Shown: in pieces, positions 1 through 10,244 of the stretch
Position numbering within the stretch: position 1 is the first letter of the stretch
Layout of the letters: every line of letters begins with the position of its first letter
Sequence record: MW812339.1
Reading direction: 5' to 3' (one strand)
DNA length: 64,000 nt
Position numbers and translations under genes: made by a program
Notes under the pieces: generated by a model
Seen by the model: only the letters and a program-made list of their open reading frames with translations
Told to the model about the DNA's origin: nothing
The model's database searches: none

Positions 1-276
1 ACACGTCGTCCCGTAATAATGCAACGGGATAACCTTCTCATCGCCCCACATTCCACGGAGTTGTGAAAGGATAAGCGTTGGGTCGGGTGGAATGAACGTC
101 AGGAAATTTTCGCCTTTGCCCAGTCCCGTAACAATAGACTTTACGGTCTGCTCGGCGTAACTCGCCAGAAACAAATAAGCAACAGCGGGCTCGACCTCGC
201 TAGTATCAGCAAGTTCGGCCCGATGCAGTAATGACTCCTGCTCGAAGATTTCAGCAATAGTCAAATATAGTTTCAT
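1..276 (-). CDS. Hypothetical protein, 5' part (runs off window)
   Basis: ATG at 276 overlaps the stop of 273..827 (ATGA); frame open to position 1 (MKLYLTIAEIFEQESLLHRAEL...). Confidence 0.7.
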   Translation of the reverse strand, partial: MKLYLTIAEIFEQESLLHRAELADTSEVEPAVAYLFLASYAEQTVKSIVTGLGKGENFLTFIPPDPTLILSQLRGMWGDEKVIPLHYYGTTC

Positions 277-827
277 TCGCAGATTAACACCACATCATTG
301 AACGCATCCCCAACGTGGGTAAAGTATCGCCCTGGATACAGAGACTCTATCAGTCCAGCGAACCCGGTGAGAAGCGTCAGTTCCTTTTCCAGTAACGCCG
401 CAGCGGCTTCAAACGCCAGTGCATGTTGTTCGTCACTGCCCTCGGCGGTTAAGAACGTCGATACCCCAATCTCGCCTTTCGCAAACTGGTCAGTAATCAC
501 CAGATTGTTCATATCGAGTCCCAAGGTCTTTTCAGGCGGCTCAGTCTGGAGAATCGTTAGCCCCGAATCATCCGTCACGTCCTGCCAATCGCCTAATGGG
601 TCATAGGTATCTTCCGTCAGCAGCTCAAGCATCTGCTGAGGGTCGCGGGTCTTTACACCGATGATGTATGCATACGCAAATCGCTGGTAGAAGTCACGGA
701 TTGTGAACTCATTCAGCTCGAGGTTACTTGCCTCCAACACAGCCAGCGTCGCTTCACGAACTTGCTCGTAAAACTTGCTGGCACCGTACTGATTTGCGAT
801 GTCCGCCACGTCAAACATTACTCTCAT
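273..827 (-). CDS. Hypothetical protein, 184 aa
   Basis: Part of a tightly coupled minus-strand operon; GGAGG SD upstream. Confidence 0.75.
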   Translation of the reverse strand: MRVMFDVADIANQYGASKFYEQVREATLAVLEASNLELNEFTIRDFYQRFAYAYIIGVKTRDPQQMLELLTEDTYDPLGDWQDVTDDSGLTILQTEPPEKTLGLDMNNLVITDQFAKGEIGVSTFLTAEGSDEQHALAFEAAAALLEKELTLLTGFAGLIESLYPGRYFTHVGDAFNDVVLICE

Positions 828-1330
828 AACACGCCTCCGAGATTTCCGATAAGCAGGTCGATTACCGGAAGCAGTTGTGGGGTAATGTGTTCGTAAGCCT
901 GCGGATTATTCCAGTCTGGAAACTTTAACCCCTGACTGTAATCCAACAAGAACTCAACCGAACTTGGGTCATGCGTGGTGTACTGCGCAGCCACCCAGCG
1001 GCCATAGTGCGTGAACCAGTATGGGGAACTGGATACCGCGGTCATATACGCACGTCCTACAGATTGGATAGCTGCTCCGTAGGTGATGACCTGATCGTTC
1101 TCCAGGATGACACCGAGTGCATTCAGTTCACGAGCCACGTAATTAAACGTACCATTCATCATGAACTTTAACTCGCCGACGGTACCCTCCTGAACAAACT
1201 GCATCGCGGTGTTAATGATACCATTCAAATCATCATTAACCTCGCGGAGAATATCGTTCGGTGGCAGTTCCGTTAAAGGCCCCGCCAGGAACAGATACTC
1301 TGGGATGAGAAAGTGCGATCGTTCAAGCAC
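824..1330 (-). CDS. Hypothetical protein, 168 aa
   Basis: Overlapping start/stop coupling with neighbours. Confidence 0.7.
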   Translation of the reverse strand: MLERSHFLIPEYLFLAGPLTELPPNDILREVNDDLNGIINTAMQFVQEGTVGELKFMMNGTFNYVARELNALGVILENDQVITYGAAIQSVGRAYMTAVSSSPYWFTHYGRWVAAQYTTHDPSSVEFLLDYSQGLKFPDWNNPQAYEHITPQLLPVIDLLIGNLGGVL

Positions 1331-1724
1331 AGTAAGAAACCCCTGTAGTTAACATTTTCCAGATACCGTCTCCTACATGCCAGAGGAGAAAGTCGGATTG
1401 TGGGAGGAACGTCATGTCACGGTGAACAGCCCACCAGATACCGTGATCTACTTTCAACGTGTCCTCCAGCAGATGCAACAACCAATACTTGTCAGTGGTG
1501 CTGGTAGAAAACAACGGATTGTCACGAACATAGTCCATGAAAAGACTGCGAACAATGCCATCAACAATACCGTATTTTTTCTCGAGCACATGGAGTCGAA
1601 CTATCTGCTCAATGTACCCATCTATCTCAACCGCCGCATCCACGTAATCGAGGTCTGCGACGTTCTTGAGTATTCCCAGCAGTTTCCCAGTGAGTTCAGG
1701 AAACTCAGCGTATACTGTCATCAT
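1323..1724 (-). CDS. Hypothetical protein, 133 aa
   Basis: Coupled ORF in the same operon. Confidence 0.7.
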   Translation of the reverse strand: MMTVYAEFPELTGKLLGILKNVADLDYVDAAVEIDGYIEQIVRLHVLEKKYGIVDGIVRSLFMDYVRDNPLFSTSTTDKYWLLHLLEDTLKVDHGIWWAVHRDMTFLPQSDFLLWHVGDGIWKMLTTGVSYCA

Positions 1725-2079
1725 AAACGTCTGTAACCTTTCGTGGAATGAAACGGAGGATTCTGTCCACCTGATTAAAGTGATACCTAAACCCTTTGGG
1801 AGGAATGCCCATTTCCTCGCAGATGGATCGGTGGACGTGACATGAGATCATATGCACATCACGTGGCGTAGATTTTGGACGATACGACTTCACGATTAAC
1901 GCAGCAACCTGAGCATCCCAGGTTCCGTGCTCGTTGAACGTCGGTATCATGTGCTCAATCAAAACCAGGATGATGTGCTTGAGTCCCGTCGACATGTCGT
2001 AGCCCGTAAAGTACACATCGGATGGGTCATTCAGAATCTTCAGGTAGGCGGTCGAGGCGATGTGATCTATCAACACCAT
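1705..2079 (-). CDS. Hypothetical protein (start uncertain; ATG 2079 chosen)
   Basis: ORF track 1705..2142; internal ATG reduces overlap with upstream gene. Confidence 0.55.
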   Translation of the reverse strand: MVLIDHIASTAYLKILNDPSDVYFTGYDMSTGLKHIILVLIEHMIPTFNEHGTWDAQVAALIVKSYRPKSTPRDVHMISCHVHRSICEEMGIPPKGFRYHFNQVDRILRFIPRKVTDVYDDSIR

Positions 2080-2590
2080 TCGGACGGTACCGCTTGTTAG
2101 GGAAGCATTGTCTGTAGTGGATGAATCTGATGTCTTCTCCAATTTGCAGCTCCAACTGTTGAATCTGCCCGCGGTGTGTTACATGTGGTTCTAACTTCAC
2201 AGTCGCGTAACGGTTATAAGGATGCTTGGCGGTTTTCAAACTGTTCTCCACCAATGCGGCGACATTATCCACAAAGGCGTTGTAACAATCTTCAAAGGCC
2301 AACCCGATAAGATATTGCGTTGAACGTAAAACGGCTACGGTCTGTCGCTCTTTCGAGATAGGGGCACCCAGTCCTTCACTTGAAACGTAAGTCCGCTGTG
2401 TTTCCACCATCTTCGGTGGCAGTATCAGCTGGTCTGCAACAAGCATCATGGTGAGATCGAATGCGTCAGTATAAGGTTCCAACAAAGGTTCCAGTCGTGC
2501 GTTAGGCATTTCTGGTACCGAATAGAAAATGTCTTCCAGTGCTGTATGCAGTAGTTGTACAGTTACGGCTTCACGTTCCTTTTGGCTCAT
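2027..2590 (-). CDS. Hypothetical protein, about 187 aa
   Basis: ATG 2590 overlaps stop of 2587..2904 (ATGA), preferred over ORF-track start 2788. Confidence 0.7.
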   Translation of the reverse strand: MSQKEREAVTVQLLHTALEDIFYSVPEMPNARLEPLLEPYTDAFDLTMMLVADQLILPPKMVETQRTYVSSEGLGAPISKERQTVAVLRSTQYLIGLAFEDCYNAFVDNVAALVENSLKTAKHPYNRYATVKLEPHVTHRGQIQQLELQIGEDIRFIHYRQCFPNKRYRPNGVDRSHRLDRLPEDSE

Positions 2591-2904
2591 CCGCAGAGCG
2601 GTAGCGTATTGGGTAGCGTCGACAGCCCCCCAGAAGCTAGAATGAACTTCAGCTGGTTCGAGGTATATTCTGACCACGTTTGCACAACTCCGTTTTTGTA
2701 GTATAAAGGAGAACGATGATGTCGTCCCAAAGCTGAGATGACAAACCACGCCTCCGTGCCAAAGTGAGTTTCCGCAATCGATAACCACTCACGCGGTATC
2801 TCATGCGTCCCCGGATAGATAAGTTCTTGCATTGCGTTCAAGATGAACTCTGCAGGCACGTCATTATCTCGTCCGGGATAAAAGTTAAAGAACATGCGCG
2901 TCAT
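2587..2904 (-). CDS. Hypothetical protein, 105 aa, first gene of operon
   Basis: AAGGAG SD; preceded by the repeated promoter-like motif at 2928-2946. Confidence 0.7.
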   Translation of the reverse strand: MTRMFFNFYPGRDNDVPAEFILNAMQELIYPGTHEIPREWLSIAETHFGTEAWFVISALGRHHRSPLYYKNGVVQTWSEYTSNQLKFILASGGLSTLPNTLPLCG

Positions 2905-2927
2905 CGAAAATGCTCCTTAAGGATAAT

Positions 2928-2946
2928 TCACGAAGATAATATCTAT
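2928..2946 (-). promoter_or_regulatory. Putative early phage promoter motif (ATAGATATTATCTTCGTGA)
   Basis: Near-identical copies at 5897-5918, 8385-8404, 15374-15388, 62200-62216, all upstream of minus-strand non-structural genes. Confidence 0.65.
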
Positions 2947-3067
2947 GCAAAAATTCTTCGAGTGGTGGTGCGCACATAAAGGTCAGGAAACGTATTTTAA
3001 TGCATATCCGTGGGTTAGCATTACCCGATGGTATGAACTGTCCTACGTGCTTTATAGGAGCTTTAGA

Positions 3068-3880
3068 ATGAACGTCATTGATTACTGTCTGCGGAAGATT
3101 CGCCGCGACATTCCCGAGCCCATTCTACGGGCAGCATTTGTACCCGACAATCTAAAGCTGCTGGGTATTGCAAGTTCCGTAGATGATCAGGTTCAACAGA
3201 AGGTGATTCGCGAGTACCTGATACCGGAAGTTTCTCGACTCGGCCAGTATCAGGAAGTTGACTTAGAGGGTATCCCTTGGGACAACGACACACAGGATTA
3301 TTTTAGCCGTATCTATTACTTAGACGACATCAAAACAGGTGGACGTCCAATACTCGATGCGCATATCGCCGTCACTCCGGTCGCCGGACAGGCGTACACA
3401 TTGCCACCAGCAGGTTCCTATCTCGATGGGGCTACCTCAGGGGTACTGGCATCCACTCAACAAGTGGTTGACAGTCAGTCAGCATTCCCACGTATCGCTT
3501 CTCCGGAAGTGGATGTCCTGGGGCCTAACACGATTCGTATCAAAGACCCAGGGATGTTCGTTTACTCAACCAAACTTGCGGTTAAGTACGAACTGTCTCC
3601 TGAGCTGAACGAAATCAAACCGGCCTTCTATCCTCTGGTCGCTGATCTGGCGGTGTTTGCTACCAAGCAATACATCTACAACAAGCTTATCTTCGACATG
3701 GACTCCGGGAAACTGGAGAACGGTATGGAGTTCGGGGCGTTCAAGAACGTTATCGAAAACTACTCTGATGCCGGCCAGATGTTCGACGACAGTGTGCCGA
3801 AGCTGCAACGTGGTCTGGTGCACAACGACAACATCGGCAACCGTTGGAACTACATGTCCGGTGGTCGCTTCAAATCTTAA
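3068..3880 (+). CDS. Conserved jumbo-phage protein, probably virion-associated, 270 aa
   Basis: AGGAG SD before ATG 3068 (MNVIDYCLRKIRRDIP); own terminator; virion role is inference from recalled phiKZ-family homologs. Confidence 0.6.
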   Translation: MNVIDYCLRKIRRDIPEPILRAAFVPDNLKLLGIASSVDDQVQQKVIREYLIPEVSRLGQYQEVDLEGIPWDNDTQDYFSRIYYLDDIKTGGRPILDAHIAVTPVAGQAYTLPPAGSYLDGATSGVLASTQQVVDSQSAFPRIASPEVDVLGPNTIRIKDPGMFVYSTKLAVKYELSPELNEIKPAFYPLVADLAVFATKQYIYNKLIFDMDSGKLENGMEFGAFKNVIENYSDAGQMFDDSVPKLQRGLVHNDNIGNRWNYMSGGRFKS

Positions 3881-3896
3881 GAAAAAAAAAAGACTA

Positions 3897-3922
3897 TACC
3901 TCTACTCATCCGAGTAGAGGTA
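3897..3922. terminator. Bidirectional rho-independent terminator
   Basis: TACCTCTACTC-ATCC-GAGTAGAGGTA, A-run on left, T-run on right, between convergent genes. Confidence 0.85.
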
Positions 3923-3932
3923 CTTTTTCTTT

Positions 3933-4331
3933 TTAACTGGCTGGACCCAACACATCCTTTAAGTGATGGGTAATGCCTGATGTCCAGGCATCGCCTTCGC
4001 GTACAGTCTCTGGCTGGGCGTTCACCAGGCGACGGAGCGAAATGGTGTGCTCTGCCAATCCTGCTACCGGCAACACAGGTCGTACGGTGGCTTGCTTAAC
4101 GTAGTCGACCACGTCATCAAATCCCTCTTTAGATGACCAGTCAATCTCTACGCCGTCACACACATCCAGTTGACGTGTGTTATTTTCTTCATCGGGGTGG
4201 AATGTAAAACCCCAATTGATGGTATCCAGGAGACCGCGGTCAAGGTCATTGACCACTTTAATTTTCGCGAGGGTATCCGGATGCGCCATAATCACGTCCA
4301 GTGGACGCAGTTTACTTTTCATGCTTAGCAT
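3933..4331 (-). CDS. Hypothetical protein, 132 aa
   Basis: AGGAG SD, ends at terminator. Confidence 0.7.
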   Translation of the reverse strand: MLSMKSKLRPLDVIMAHPDTLAKIKVVNDLDRGLLDTINWGFTFHPDEENNTRQLDVCDGVEIDWSSKEGFDDVVDYVKQATVRPVLPVAGLAEHTISLRRLVNAQPETVREGDAWTSGITHHLKDVLGPAS

Positions 4332-4392
4332 CTCCTATGGAATCTATTACAGCACAGACTCCCTACAGGATAGGCTGGTGCCGTAAAAAAGG

Positions 4393-4803
4393 TCAGTGTT
4401 CAGTGCCGAGGGTTTTATAATGCTTATAGTTCAACGTGTGTAGGGCATCCAACACGATGGCGAATACTTCCTCATAAGGAAGTATTTTATTTGTCATGGA
4501 ATAACACATGGAATGAAACAGCGATGGAACCAGCTTAGGAGAATCGGCAAGATTCATCACTTCACTTCTTGAGAGGCATTCACGGGTAGCAACTACCGGA
4601 ACCTCTTCCCCATCGTACACTGCGCGCACTTCGACAATGTCCATTGTGTCGAACCACGGTCTGAATTGTGGCAGGTCAATCATCACGGCAAAAACGTCAC
4701 TGGCCAACTGGCCACTGTACGCACCGTTTACAACTAAGACTGCGGGTATCTTTCCCTGACGCAAACATTCAAAAAAGTTTAACGGGTCCGGATTTACTTT
4801 CAT
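4393..4803 (-). CDS. Hypothetical protein, 136 aa
   Basis: AGGAGG SD. Confidence 0.7.
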   Translation of the reverse strand: MKVNPDPLNFFECLRQGKIPAVLVVNGAYSGQLASDVFAVMIDLPQFRPWFDTMDIVEVRAVYDGEEVPVVATRECLSRSEVMNLADSPKLVPSLFHSMCYSMTNKILPYEEVFAIVLDALHTLNYKHYKTLGTEH

Positions 4804-4855
4804 CGATTATTCCTCCTATATTAACCTGGAAGAGTCGTGAAAAATCAAAAAAAAA

Positions 4856-4875
4856 GAGGGAACCGAAGTTCCCTC
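4856..4875 (-). terminator. Rho-independent terminator
   Basis: GAGGGAAC-TTCG-GTTCCCTC followed by long U-run on minus strand. Confidence 0.85.
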
Positions 4876-4889
4876 AAAAGCATCGACTA

Positions 4890-5843
4890 CTAACCAAAAG
4901 CTTTAACCCATTCCTCACGCGGGAACAGGTCGTATACGTTTTGCGGAATCGTTAGGACGTAGTTCTGGGCGGAACCTTCACGAATCCAATATTCAACGGA
5001 CGGATAAATCTCCGCGGGATTGGGGCCCGTCAAGTCTCTACTCGTCATCAGGATATTTTTATCACCCAGGTACTGGCCATCAGGTAAACGAATCAACGGT
5101 AACCATTTATGTACGAGCTGTACAGTTCCGGTAGACAGCCCGTTGTTAGATACCAGAGTGTCCAAGTCTAATCGAGTTGGGTCGAGTTGTTTACACAACG
5201 TTTGGAACAACGCTTTGTTGTACGGGTCTACCTGGATAAACAATCGGTGCCAGGTGCCTGTACCGAACGGATTGTAAATGTTATTCCATTCAGACCAACC
5301 TGCACGCAATGCATTTATTGCCTTCATCGGTGTATCGATTTTTGTCGGCAGGTTGAACGGTGTTAATGCGTAGTCCCTAGTAGGCGCTTCACCGGTAGCG
5401 CGTTCGTAGGCTTCACGTAAGCGGCGCATCTTGATACGCAAAGCATCGCCCACGTAGACCAGCAGGCGACCTTCATCAGGGTTACTGCTACGTTCGGTAT
5501 AGAGAGCATCACCAAAGTGTCTGACGAACTCTATAGCCAGGAATCTGGTGTGGTACGTTGGTGAGACGTACTCGATAAAGTCATTCGGTTGGAAATGGAA
5601 GTGGGGTAACGATTCACCGCTCGCCCATTTGTGCATGAACTTGAATTCAAATCGGCTATACTGCATGGCGTCTTCTACTGCGCGGACTGCTTCCCAGGCA
5701 TGGATGTTCGTACGGAACATCGAACCGAATGGATAGAACCTGCGAGGAAGGAATGGGCGAATACGAGTGGCTTCTTCTAAAGAGAAACCGTCCTGGTGCA
5801 TACCTTCAATAGCACTCACGTTGTTGCGATGGAAATGTTGCAT
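4890..5843 (-). CDS. Hypothetical protein, 317 aa
   Basis: Long ORF with upstream promoter motif and downstream terminator. Confidence 0.75.
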   Translation of the reverse strand: MQHFHRNNVSAIEGMHQDGFSLEEATRIRPFLPRRFYPFGSMFRTNIHAWEAVRAVEDAMQYSRFEFKFMHKWASGESLPHFHFQPNDFIEYVSPTYHTRFLAIEFVRHFGDALYTERSSNPDEGRLLVYVGDALRIKMRRLREAYERATGEAPTRDYALTPFNLPTKIDTPMKAINALRAGWSEWNNIYNPFGTGTWHRLFIQVDPYNKALFQTLCKQLDPTRLDLDTLVSNNGLSTGTVQLVHKWLPLIRLPDGQYLGDKNILMTSRDLTGPNPAEIYPSVEYWIREGSAQNYVLTIPQNVYDLFPREEWVKAFG

Positions 5844-5896
5844 AGTCGAATACCTTCTAGTCGAATAGGATAAGATTGTGATGAGGCTTTCTCATC

Positions 5897-5918
5897 TCAC
5901 GTAGATAATATCTATCTG
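5897..5918 (-). promoter_or_regulatory. Putative early phage promoter motif (CAGATAGATATTATCTACGTGA)
   Basis: Repeated intergenic motif, about 55 nt upstream of 4890..5843. Confidence 0.7.
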
Positions 5919-5952
5919 TCTTATTTTCGAATACAAAAAAAGAAAAGGAGTT

Positions 5953-5976
5953 GTCCTCACTCCGAAGAGTGAGGAC
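5953..5976 (-). terminator. Rho-independent terminator
   Basis: 10-bp stem GTCCTCACTC/GAGTGAGGAC, UUCG loop, U-rich tail on minus strand. Confidence 0.8.
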
Positions 5977-6075
5977 TTCCCTGGGTGTTGGCATGTAAAT
6001 CTACAAAGGTCTTACACAGGTCAATCAGACGAGGGCTAATCGTCAGGAACTTAGCTACTGGGCGTTAGCTAATCT

Positions 6076-6552
6076 TTAACGCAGGGTGTCAACAGTTCGA
6101 CCGTGACTGTTCGTAACAAACACCTGGTCACCCGGATAGAAGAACTCGTAACGCACCGTATTGGCGCGATACCCTGGGTCTTCTTCATCCCGGAATTCTG
6201 GTAAAGCATACGTCAGCACACCGATAGCATCATCCAGTGGATTAATGCCTTTAACGTTGGCTACCGCAATAGATTCTTTCGGCAGATGGCCATCACCGTT
6301 ATCGTGCACTGTTATTTCAACGCAGCTGATTTGGTGTGCCACAGATGCCGTTTCTTCATCAGTACCGATAAACGCAGTACCGGTAGAAACGACCTTGCCA
6401 TGTCCGTCTGTAGGCAGCGGAACAGGGCTAGACGATTCTTTCACCAATGCCAAAGCATCAGAGAAGACCGCAGAGGTATGATCGCCGAGTGTGTACTCTT
6501 CCAGTTCGAGTGGGGAGCGATTACCTTTCACATTACGCATGATCGTAAACAT
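6076..6552 (-). CDS. Hypothetical protein, about 158 aa
   Basis: ATG 6552 (MFTIMRNVKG) behind AAGG and a CAA-rich unstructured leader. Confidence 0.65.
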   Translation of the reverse strand: MFTIMRNVKGNRSPLELEEYTLGDHTSAVFSDALALVKESSSPVPLPTDGHGKVVSTGTAFIGTDEETASVAHQISCVEITVHDNGDGHLPKESIAVANVKGINPLDDAIGVLTYALPEFRDEEDPGYRANTVRYEFFYPGDQVFVTNSHGRTVDTLR

Positions 6553-6641
6553 GATTGTTACCTTTTTGTTGCTATTGCTTCTATTGTTGTTGTTCCGTGT
6601 CATTTCCCACACGGGTGGGTTCGGTTGTTAGCCGAATAAGT

Positions 6642-6920
6642 TTTTCCGGGATGGTATTACACATCAACACACCAGGCATGGATAGAAGTTGGCTTCCATC
6701 CCGGAAAAGAGGTCACAGACCGAGGGCTCGTGAAGGCTCGATGGATAAGCGTCAATAAAAACCCTTTCAGCCTCTGGTCTGTATTAGGTCCAAAGTCCCC
6801 GTGCGGAGGAGCAGCCCATGCAGGTAGGCGGCAATTGACACGGAGACTAAGGATAGGTTTTCGTGTTACCCTGACCGGATGAATGGATGTCTTCGGAACG
6901 TCTTCAGGATAGGGTAACAC
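6642..6920 (-). ncRNA. Four tandem 55-70 nt stem-closed structured units (ncRNA candidates)
   Basis: Closing stems 6642-54/6696-6708 (13 bp perfect), 6715-25/6771-82, 6794-6803/6839-48, 6863-72/6911-20 (10 bp perfect); no credible ORF. Confidence 0.5.
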
Positions 6921-6925
6921 AAAAG

Positions 6926-7030
6926 TGGTGCTGTGTACTGGGGACTCGAACCCCAGGAACCCTTAGGGTGTTCAGTGGTGAGCTTTTACCTCACGACCTA
7001 CTTAGGTTTGGCCACTTCCTTACACACAGC
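6926..7030 (-). ncRNA. Non-canonical tRNA-like RNA, 105 nt, encoded CCA
   Basis: GCTGTGTG/TACACAGC acceptor, type-II-like D arm, GGTTCGAGTCC T arm, long variable arm, extended bulged anticodon arm, ACCA end. Confidence 0.7.
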
Positions 7031-7039
7031 ATTGTAATG

Positions 7040-7112
7040 CGACTCTGGCAGGACTTGAACCTGCGACATATGGATTAACAGTCCACCGTTCTACCGACTG
7101 AACTACAGAGTC
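7040..7112 (-). tRNA. trnN: tRNA-Asn(GUU)
   Basis: Canonical cloverleaf GACTCTG/CAGAGTC, loop CTGTTAA, T loop TTCAAGT; CCA not encoded. Confidence 0.95.
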
Positions 7113-7195: not shown

Positions 7196-7196
7196 T

Positions 7197-7261
7197 TGTC
7201 CTTGATGGATTTGAACCATCCTCGTCATTTGACTGACGACCCCAGACCGACCGGGAAAGAC
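7197..7261 (-). ncRNA. Minimal tRNA-like element, 65 nt
   Basis: Intact T arm GATGG-TTCAAAT-CCATC, 6-bp acceptor GTCTTT/AAGGAC, 6-bp anticodon-like stem with 6-nt loop GTCAAA, shortened D arm. Confidence 0.55.
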
Positions 7262-7265
7262 CATT

Positions 7266-7448: not shown

Positions 7449-7518
7449 CGTCGGTTATGGGATTCTAACCCACCTAGTCTGGTCGCGAGCCCAGTGCATC
7501 ACAGTTTTGCTTACCGAC
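7449..7518 (-). ncRNA. Degenerate tRNA (CGC-like anticodon, 8-nt loop, mutated T loop)
   Basis: GTCGGT/ACCGAC acceptor, GCA/TGC D stem, CTGG/CCAG stem with loop GCTCGCGA, T loop TTAGAAT. Confidence 0.55.
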
Positions 7519-7587: not shown

Positions 7588-7660
7588 GGGCATCCTGGTG
7601 AGGAGTCGAACCTCAACCGTTTCCTGCATAAGCCGGATACGGTGTTCCACAACCCAGGCG
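7588..7660 (-). ncRNA. Non-canonical tRNA-like RNA with extended anticodon arm
   Basis: T arm TGAGG-TTCGACT-CCTCA, acceptor CGCCTGG/CCAGGATG with bulge, 3-bp D stem, long CGT..TCC/GGA..ACG arm. Confidence 0.55.
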
Positions 7661-7665
7661 ACTGA

Positions 7666-7821: not shown

Positions 7822-8358
7822 TTAAGCTGCTTTGGCCTTGTGTGTCTTAGAAAGATACCGTGCCGGGTTTTGGCGAATATCCACAATTGTGGAGTGGTGC
7901 ACGCCGTACTTCTCACCAACAGAACGAACCGTGCCATGTTCATTCTCTAATATCTCTCGGACATCAGAACCAGAGAGCTTGATATTTCTCGAACCATCCG
8001 GTGGGACAAACAACCCTTCTTCTATCGCGTGGATAGTATTCTCACGATGCGTTACCCATTCCAGATTGACTGCCCTAGGGTCAGTCTTCTTTCCGTTTTT
8101 GTGGTTTACACACGGTTTGTTTTCTGGATTAGGCACAAAGGCAGTGGCCACTTGGATGTGCGTTTTGAGAACGACGTTTGTTCCTTTTCTTCCACCGACC
8201 TTGGAGATGTGCCCAGGATACCCATTGATTAAGTTCTGACGCACAGGTCTGTTGCTGCGTTTTGAGAACATAACACCATCTTCATTAACTAGAAAATGGT
8301 CTGGGCAACTCACACAGTCTTTCCACTCGCCGGCTGGAAGGTTTAACTCTTTACTCAT
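7822..8358 (-). CDS. Free-standing HNH homing endonuclease (NUMOD4-like N-terminus, HNH_3-type core)
   Basis: VNHKNGKKTDPRAVNLEWVTHRENTIHA matches the HNH_3 pattern; C-terminal HTH-like segment. Confidence 0.9.
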   Translation of the reverse strand: MSKELNLPAGEWKDCVSCPDHFLVNEDGVMFSKRSNRPVRQNLINGYPGHISKVGGRKGTNVVLKTHIQVATAFVPNPENKPCVNHKNGKKTDPRAVNLEWVTHRENTIHAIEEGLFVPPDGSRNIKLSGSDVREILENEHGTVRSVGEKYGVHHSTIVDIRQNPARYLSKTHKAKAA

Positions 8359-9704: not shown

Positions 9705-10244
9705 TTACTGGTCCAGGTAGCGGAACAGTTTTCTTCGTGATGGGTCTTCAGGTTGTAACCCGAGGTCAAGTTCCTGAATCTCACCACCGCTGTTGATATC
9801 GTAACGGATTGCGACTTTCACCGCATCCGTAGCAGAGACACCTGCAGCCATTGCACCGATGGCGAATTCGCAACCGCTGCCGACTGCCATAGGCGGTTCG
9901 ACTTTCGCAATCCATGGAACGGCTTTCTCGACTTCCTGGCCACCTGTGTAAACTTCACCATCAACGGTGATAACCAGGTAAGACATCGAGATACCTTCCG
10001 GCCAACGAGTGTGGGCTGCAAGGCCCATTGTGTCGCCGTGACCGGCCAGAACATTGCGCAGAATCTGTTGGGATTCGATACCGCCAGCAACGCCAAACGC
10101 GATTGCTTGCTTGCCATCAACGAACCAGGTCTCGCCTTCCGGACACTTGAAGATTTTCTCAGTGCGGAGGTCGAGGCGATACTGCGCTTGAGTCATCTGG
10201 CTGTCAGATGCCAGAGATACACCGTCAAAAGCAATCGTGGTCAT
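9705..10244 (-). CDS. HslV/proteasome-beta-like Ntn hydrolase (putative threonine peptidase)
   Basis: N-terminal MTTIAFDG..LASDSQ, K near residue 30, and AVGSGCEFAIGAM (GSG motif). Confidence 0.75.
   Translation of the reverse strand: MTTIAFDGVSLASDSQMTQAQYRLDLRTEKIFKCPEGETWFVDGKQAIAFGVAGGIESQQILRNVLAGHGDTMGLAAHTRWPEGISMSYLVITVDGEVYTGGQEVEKAVPWIAKVEPPMAVGSGCEFAIGAMAAGVSATDAVKVAIRYDINSGGEIQELDLGLQPEDPSRRKLFRYLDQ

Follow-up and report, generated by a model that had tools for sequence, protein, structure and literature searches.

The 105-nt gene located at 6926..7030 on the minus strand of the window, which is the whole stretch of 64,000 nucleotides analyzed from record MW812339.1, probably encodes a tRNA-like RNA that is processed, does not decode and descends from a class II tRNA. 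The source phage, pEa_SNUABM_29, to which the window is 100% identical, is an Erwinia jumbo phage of Seoulvirus (SPN3US-like) with a genome of 249 kb; a coordinate in the record equals the window coordinate plus 124000, and the GenBank record has no annotation at the site of the gene. The delimitation of the gene, which includes an encoded A-CCA, relies on its sequence and on three phage homologues, and position 1 of the RNA corresponds to 7030 and position 105 to 6926. The gene forms the promoter-distal end of a minus-strand tRNA cluster, the order of which along transcription is tRNA-Trp (9695-9620), tRNA-Tyr (8504-8422), an ORF annotated as hypothetical that encodes an HNH endonuclease (7822..8358; Pfam HNH_3, 4e-7; PHROG 59, 2e-31), weak tRNA-like elements, a tRNA with anticodon CAT annotated as Ile2 or Met (7196-7122), the adjoining tRNA-Asn(GUU) (7040..7112) and the 105-nt gene. 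It lies 9 nt downstream of tRNA-Asn on the shared strand and in the same presumed polycistron, with the spacer CAUUACAAU (7031..7039, minus strand) between the tRNA-Asn discriminator and the RNA. A scan for sigma-70 promoters and terminators was uninformative; the plus-strand ORFs overlapping the gene (34-63 aa) are regarded as mechanical, and so is a downstream GTG ORF (87 aa), for which a family search returned no matches. Beside tRNA-Trp, the ORF at 9705-10244 (minus strand) matches the HslV-family peptidase PHROG (6e-35), and its orthologue in Salmonella phage SPAsTU is annotated as 'HslV family protein'. Just past the tRNA array, at 6852-6924 (minus strand), a 12-14-bp long-range stem, UUUUGUGUUA(C)CC ... 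GG(G)UAACACGAAA, with a loop of ~40-50 nt was observed; it is kept in SPAsTU (L002 ~3170-3243, minus strand) with one compensatory pair and may be a processing or termination element.

The earlier note had listed the helices of this RNA from the letters of the DNA, and all of them can be read from the sequence, on the minus strand, in the order acceptor 5' strand, UA, D arm, A, anticodon arm, variable arm, T arm, acceptor 3' strand and A-CCA. The acceptor, GCTGTGTG/TACACAGC, consists of eight pairs with G.U as the innermost pair; its 5' strand GCUGUGUG (RNA 1-8; 7023..7030) pairs with the 3' strand UACACAGC (RNA 94-101; 6930..6937) with probabilities of 0.76-1.0. The D arm, AGG-AAGUGGCCAAA-CCU (RNA 11-27; 7004..7020; AGG-AAGTGGCCAAA-CCT in DNA letters), is preceded by the linker U9 A10, has a 3-bp stem and an 11-nt loop, and contains the equivalents of A14, G15, G18G19 and A21; its pair probability in RNAfold is low (0.05), as is common for D arms. 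The elongated anticodon arm (RNA 29-57; 6974..7002) reads AGU AGGUC GUGAG-GUAAAAG-CUCAC C ACU and exceeds the normal length by 12 nt, eight on the 5' side and four on the 3' side, and its terminal hairpin GUGAG-GUAAAAG-CUCAC (RNA 37-53; 6978..6994; probabilities 0.86-0.99) is unique in the window. The 17-nt variable arm GAACACCCUAAGGGUUC (RNA 58-74; 6957..6973) aligns to the variable arms of tRNA-Ser and tRNA-Leu, and the T arm CUGGGG-UUCGAGU-CCCCAG (RNA 75-93; 6938..6956; six pairs with probabilities of 0.96-0.98) carries in UUCGAGU a canonical element of the tRNA core. The discriminator A and the encoded CCA (6926..6929) complete the molecule, and ACCA follows the helix in both known variants despite their differing acceptors. 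The nucleotides conserved for tertiary interactions (U8, A14, G18G19, T54-Psi55-C56 and A58) are present together with the 3' NCCA, and the fold has a z-score of -2.7, with 0/200 shuffles folding equally well in RNAfold. In normal mode ARAGORN did not call the gene, and the Rfam models RF00005 (tRNA) and RF01852 (tRNA-Sec) gave no match at E<=10, even on a 122-nt slice with the most permissive filters. The Rfam matches that did appear, to Plastid-ycf2, psbI-rps4 (antisense tRNA), mascRNA and tmRNA, lay far under threshold and were rejected as reflecting the T arm or antisense tRNA-likeness alone.

BLAST against 50,697 phage records found the gene in just three other genomes, those of pSal-SNUABM-04, pEa_SNUABM_43 and pEa_SNUABM_42, all belonging to Machinavirus, a genus differing from Seoulvirus, and all carrying one common sequence variant; the total sample is two sequence variants in four genomes, all of one laboratory and country. 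The two variants differ at six columns, all of which fall within three paired events of the acceptor and T stems: the acceptor pair T3-A99 is replaced by C-G in the Machinavirus copies, the acceptor pair T5-A97 is missing from them, and the T-stem pair G78-C90 is replaced by A-T (A-U in RNA), so that the acceptor shows one compensatory substitution and one paired indel. No helix is broken between the variants and the rest of the body (~90 nt) is unchanged; the chance of six random columns falling in this way, counting position alone, is ~3e-6. Since all six differences make up three paired events, there is good evidence from the alignment that the acceptor and T helices are under selection. 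The two pairs in excess of a 7/5 arrangement, G8.U94 and C75-G93, are invariant, so covariation is silent on both, and it is equally silent within the family on the D, anticodon and variable arms, which are identical in all copies; because these arms are without variation, most of the cloverleaf rests on analogy and thermodynamics. The near-identical body could also reflect recent transfer instead of purifying selection. The acceptor/T branch departs from the canonical 7+5 arrangement (12 bp) in both variants, being 8+6 in the window and 7+6 in the homologues. The 8+6 stack described from the window therefore stands for pEa_SNUABM_29, and falls as a trait of the family, as the three other copies have 7+6 pairs, a stack of 13 and not 14 bp; since the variants differ in acceptor length (8 versus 7 bp), no precise length is required.

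Additional carriers were not found by exact and degenerate pattern scans of IMG/VR, JGI metagenomes and GTDB genomes, nor by BLAST against phages, E. coli genomes and plasmids, and 12 IMG/VR matches to the hairpin 17-mer were discarded as chance occurrences inside unrelated sequence. A covariance model built from the conserved core of the RNA, R1, likewise recovered no distant homologue in 17 related jumbo-phage tRNA clusters or in the T4 tRNA region. The distribution of the gene is patchy and, because most relatives lack it, it is dispensable. Such a pattern of absence, from most relatives and from the IMG/VR, JGI metagenome, GTDB, E. coli and plasmid collections, together with the failure of standard tRNA finders to recognize the gene, would also suit a non-functional relic, that is, a class II tRNA gene disabled by insertions and hitch-hiking in an endonuclease-shuffled cluster, with any transcript as a by-product. 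We hold this reading to be somewhat unlikely, the main argument against it being that 6/6 variant differences are compensatory and 0 helix-breaking, for which two variants form a thin basis; the tertiary-interaction nucleotides and the A-CCA are moreover all intact, and the terminal hairpin is perfect.

The closest matches of R1 outside the family were always class II tRNAs, with 20.9 bits for tRNA-Leu(UAA) and 15.8-17.9 bits for tRNA-Ser(GCU), and in T4 with 20.2 bits for tRNA-Ser and 19.2 bits for tRNA-Leu. When aligned to these tRNAs, the RNA carries the 8+4 nt of its anticodon arm and G93, a single nucleotide at the T/acceptor junction, as insertions, and its C75 corresponds to tRNA position 48. 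The D loop AAGUGGCCAAA resembles that of phage tRNA-Ser, and an identical loop was found in a soil tRNA of JGI contig Ga0187778_10023913 (L027 2158-2245, minus strand; 29.5 bits with R1), a class II tRNA that has a 7/5 frame, the anticodon UGC (Ala) and U73 in addition to its long variable arm. The search pattern required the loop to be identical but prescribed neither the flanks nor the stem change: here the flanking UA and A are shared while the D stem covaries, GGG/CCC in the soil tRNA versus AGG/CCU in the 105-nt RNA. The soil tRNA is of the irregular kind described from peat and forest soils. On the grounds of the R1 alignments, the tRNA-Ser-like D loop and the similarity to the soil tRNA, the 105-nt RNA is a class II tRNA scaffold with two lengthening insertions. 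With class II tRNA-Leu and tRNA-Ser it shares the 3-bp D stem, the 11-nt loop with GG, the long variable arm, the canonical T loop and the acceptor with NCCA; it differs from them in the 12 extra anticodon-arm nucleotides and the extra G at the T/acceptor junction, as well as in the 8-bp acceptor of pEa_SNUABM_29, the nominal AAA anticodon and its being missed by tRNA models. The sequence and the R1 alignments thus bear out the description of a tRNA-like RNA with a Leu/Ser-type D arm and a long variable arm, and the 8+4 extra nucleotides relative to class II tRNAs confirm that its anticodon arm is abnormal. A chimeric origin, with the hairpin as the former D arm and the variable arm as the former anticodon arm, was considered from a local alignment to tRNA-Ile(GAT) and ruled out, as the alignment is weak and gapped, conflicts with the perfect 5-bp hairpin and implies a zero-length variable region.

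In the 7-nt loop of the terminal hairpin, AAA is framed by a U at the '33' position and an A at the '37' position, and ARAGORN in intron mode called both variants as tRNA-Thr(cgt) with a 12-nt intron at 37/38, so that a genuine decoding tRNA has to be weighed, either one in which removal of the 12-nt insert gives tRNA-Thr(CGU) or one in which the AAA loop reads UUU. We consider this very improbable. The canonical 5-bp anticodon stem directly below position 26 is absent, the stem and its 7-nt loop being displaced by 8+4 nt. The AGU/ACU base with its 5x1 internal loop, which leaves a single nucleotide at position 26, has a probability of 0.003, and the isolated arm prefers GGU/ACU, a C.C mismatch and the 5-bp stem, equal to nine stacked layers; in both registers the distance of the loop from the elbow is greater by 3-4 base-pair steps than that in any active tRNA. 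The anticodon stem of known active tRNAs measures at most 6 bp (PMC7609411) and their acceptor branch at most 13 bp (PMC5389517), and the arm of 8-9 layers exceeds the former value. With regard to splicing, the bulge-helix-bulge motif is absent, the 12-nt 'intron' of ARAGORN being without flanking 3-nt bulges; the lone possible 3-nt bulge with a 4-bp helix is predicted not to give a 7-nt loop, and the spliced product would carry an A.C mismatch in the anticodon stem. No splicing endonuclease was seen here, and we know of none in enterobacteria. A spliced product would further place G37 next to an anticodon that reads ANN and put a class II variable arm on a 'Thr' tRNA, which is implausible, and, to our knowledge, A34 anticodons except ACG are not used in bacteria. 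The over-long stack and the abnormal anticodon arm agree with the suggestion made from the sequence that the RNA is not an ordinary decoder.

The same note had described the RNA as allo-tRNA-like, which did not hold. What defines allo-tRNAs is a branch of 12 bp, divided 8/4 or 9/3, together with a tRNA-Sec-like long D stem with a tetraloop; their discriminator is mostly G73/U73 (serine identity), and their delivery by EF-Tu was demonstrated in E. coli (PMC5389517). The 105-nt RNA has the long variable arm (17 nt), but its branch runs to 13-14 bp and includes a T stem of 5-6 bp, its D stem is 3 bp long and closes an 11-nt loop, and its discriminator is A73 in both variants; it is not an allo-tRNA, because every defining feature except the long variable arm is missing. 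The accompanying premise that longer helices lower EF-Tu compatibility was also wrong for allo-tRNAs, which retain a 12-bp branch and are delivered by EF-Tu (PMC5389517). A branch above 12 bp is found in tRNA-Sec only, at 13 bp (PMC5389517), and against the bacterial tRNA-Sec branch (8/5) the Machinavirus copies have 13 bp (7/6, or 8/5 with tandem G.U/U.G) and the window copy 14, the extra pairs being invariant. Like tRNA-Sec, the RNA has a branch of more than 12 bp, a long variable arm and an extended anticodon arm, and phage clusters are reported to hold irregular tRNAs; unlike it, the RNA lacks the D arm of 6 bp with a 4-nt loop and the UCA anticodon (the loop is GUAAAAG), has A73 and, in pEa_SNUABM_29, 14 bp, and is not matched by RF01852. 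Since the RNA also lacks a 12-bp branch divided 8/4 or 9/3, a long D stem capped by a tetraloop, and G73/U73, membership in the allo-tRNA or tRNA-Sec family can be given hardly any credence. The allo-tRNAs and 'irregular tRNA polycistrons' of Mukai et al. (PMC5389517) are nonetheless alike in being non-canonical and Ser-like, with odd anticodons and some of them clustered, and some are charged yet unused in translation (PMC5389517); they are unlike the 105-nt RNA in keeping the 12-bp branch, the long D stem and EF-Tu compatibility.

Comparison with SPAsTU, the closest Seoulvirus relative, revealed the gene and its 9-nt leader as a precise ~110-nt insertion between G73 and CCA of tRNA-Asn, with both flanks homologous; the CCA that corresponds to that of the 105-nt RNA belongs in SPAsTU to tRNA-Asn. 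A second junction was also observed: Machina, Parshik and pEa_SNUABM_10 read tRNA-Ser...GCCA|TGTTCTCTTGCTG, and in pSal-SNUABM-04 CATTGC, the RNA and ACCA are inserted exactly at this GCCA|TGTTCTCTTGCTG junction, while in pEa_SNUABM_6 a different irregular tRNA-like gene occupies it. As these junctions show, the gene evidently travels as a cassette from one tRNA 3' end to another within phage tRNA clusters. The tRNA-Asn of pEa_SNUABM_29 is identical to that of Machinavirus at 73/74 positions and to that of SPAsTU at 69/74, and the phages have a common host; together with the junction insertions and the HNH endonuclease, the shared host and the tRNA-Asn similarity point to cassette exchange by recombination during co-infection, with the HNH endonuclease as a likely driver of the shuffling. 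An HNH endonuclease within a tRNA cluster recalls SegB of the T4 tRNA region, which has a role in the preferential inheritance of that region.

Irregular tRNA-like genes were also observed around the 105-nt gene and in the clusters of related phages. The tRNA(CAT) has in three relatives (L003 3141-3216, L019 ~3499-3575 and L004 3136-3211, followed by G-CC in all three) an 8-bp acceptor abutting a 5-bp T stem, a 13-bp tRNA-Sec-like branch with covariation; in pEa_SNUABM_29 it has two acceptor mismatches, or a shifted register with one bulged U, and the Rfam tRNA model covers its positions 10-63 only. The element at 7449-7518 (minus strand) scores 24 bits against the Rfam tRNA model, under threshold, and has an 8-nt anticodon loop GCUCGCGA, the T loop UUAGAAU and a D loop without GG; its homologue in pEa_SNUABM_6 (L020 ~2842-2915), which is the gene occupying the exact pSal-SNUABM-04 insertion junction, differs from it at six internal positions that form three compensatory pairs. 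In Machina (L018 3221-3317), a 94-nt gene annotated as 'tRNA-Ile(aat)' has a long variable arm. Stratton (L029 3846-3965) and Asesino (L031 3597-3717) carry 120-121-nt 'tRNA-Ile(aat)' genes directly after tRNA-Ser(gct); these combine a 7/5 acceptor/T frame with a D arm that lacks GG, and a very long internal hairpin takes the place of the anticodon arm. Their architecture is analogous to that of the 105-nt RNA, although R1 does not match them. From these cases, namely tRNA(CAT), 7449-7518, Machina and Stratton/Asesino, it follows that elongated A/U-loop tRNA-like genes recur in these clusters. The acceptor mismatches of tRNA(CAT), the several degenerate-looking tRNA-like sequences in the cluster and the reduced appearance of Seoulvirus clusters (SPN3US has two tRNAs) would fit the presence of disabled relics, whereas the compensatory pattern of 7449-7518, a second irregular element, speaks against a relic as it does for the 105-nt gene.

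Two further elements were called under relaxed ARAGORN thresholds only, at 7196-7263 (minus strand; 68 nt, 'Asp(gtc)', with a 19-bit tRNA-Sec match as well) and at 7588-7661 (minus strand; 74 nt, 'Ala(ggc)'), and these may be degenerate tRNAs. The Machina gene (L018 3221-3317) and a gene of pSal-SNUABM-04 called tRNA-Pro(cgg) by ARAGORN (L003 3063-3141) have a common acceptor/D/T scaffold, TGGCTCCG.../...CGGAGCAA, spanning 8 positions with one G.A mismatch, and wholly different anticodon and variable domains, which by their sequence looks like domain swapping within a tRNA scaffold.

By analogy, the T4 species 1 RNA (rnaC) is the nearest functional counterpart of the 105-nt RNA: it too closes a phage tRNA cluster at its distal end and is encoded on the strand of the tRNAs, the cluster also holds a homing endonuclease, SegB, and rnaC combines oversized inner arms with a terminal helix and a T arm of canonical form. 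It differs in its length of 139 nt and in having no recognizable D arm or variable arm layout, and homology was not detected, R1 matching its T arm alone at 7.7 bits. We know of no function established for rnaC. The tRNA-Other of Bacillus cereus is bacterial, unrelated in sequence and class I-like in architecture. As described, it offers a precedent for a tRNA-like small RNA that is charged and non-decoding (PMC5389517).

A processed, non-decoding RNA on a class II scaffold is supported by the compensatory changes of the irregular neighbors and by the precedent of rnaC for a stable tRNA-like RNA at a cluster end. Its anticodon arm reaches 8-9 stacked layers through 12 nucleotides that class II tRNAs lack, and a single additional G extends the T/acceptor stack to 14 bp in pEa_SNUABM_29 and to 13 bp in the Machinavirus copies. 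The RNA would be co-transcribed with the tRNAs and excised in tRNA fashion by RNase P and the 3' trimming and CCA enzymes, and it might be charged by an anticodon-blind synthetase. Putative charging by LeuRS or SerRS with poor binding to EF-Tu is plausible, and A73 favors a Leu-type over a Ser-type identity under the E. coli identity rules. Decoding on the ribosome would not take place, since the L of this RNA exceeds that of every known active tRNA in the length of both arms. More speculatively, the RNA may act as a decoy or sponge for a tRNA-binding host factor, for example a tRNA-targeting defense nuclease or toxin, defenses for which a literature context exists (PMC10264068, PMC13056530). 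A broader proposal takes in the 105-nt family, the 94-nt Machina and 120-nt Stratton/Asesino 'tRNA-Ile(aat)' genes and the element 7449-7518 as a set of 'XL' tRNA-like RNAs of Erwinia/Salmonella jumbo phages, which would be tRNA-like-matured and perhaps aminoacylated decoys for tRNA-targeting host immune nucleases or toxins, or shields of host tRNAs; we rate it as unlikely. The A-rich loop GUAAAAG shows complementarity to the UUUU in the anticodon loop of tRNA-Lys(UUU), and in a speculative variant of the decoy its AAAA would pair with this UUUU.

Phage tRNA clusters are now chiefly seen as counter-measures against tRNA-cleaving bacterial defenses, and the clusters examined here also contain unannotated tRNA-like genes that standard finders miss. 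Irregular phage tRNA-like RNAs are a known kind, of which the 105-nt RNA is a variant; because it is structurally selected and yet no ordinary adaptor, it offers a small, concrete and testable case in which a tRNA mimic may serve outside translation, and it probes the tolerance of RNase P, the CCA enzyme, synthetases and EF-Tu for lengthened arms. Even if it were a relic, the gene would still record how tRNA genes are gained and lost as cassettes at CCA ends in endonuclease-bearing clusters, and if the decoy reading were true, it would represent a new class of RNA-based anti-defense factor.
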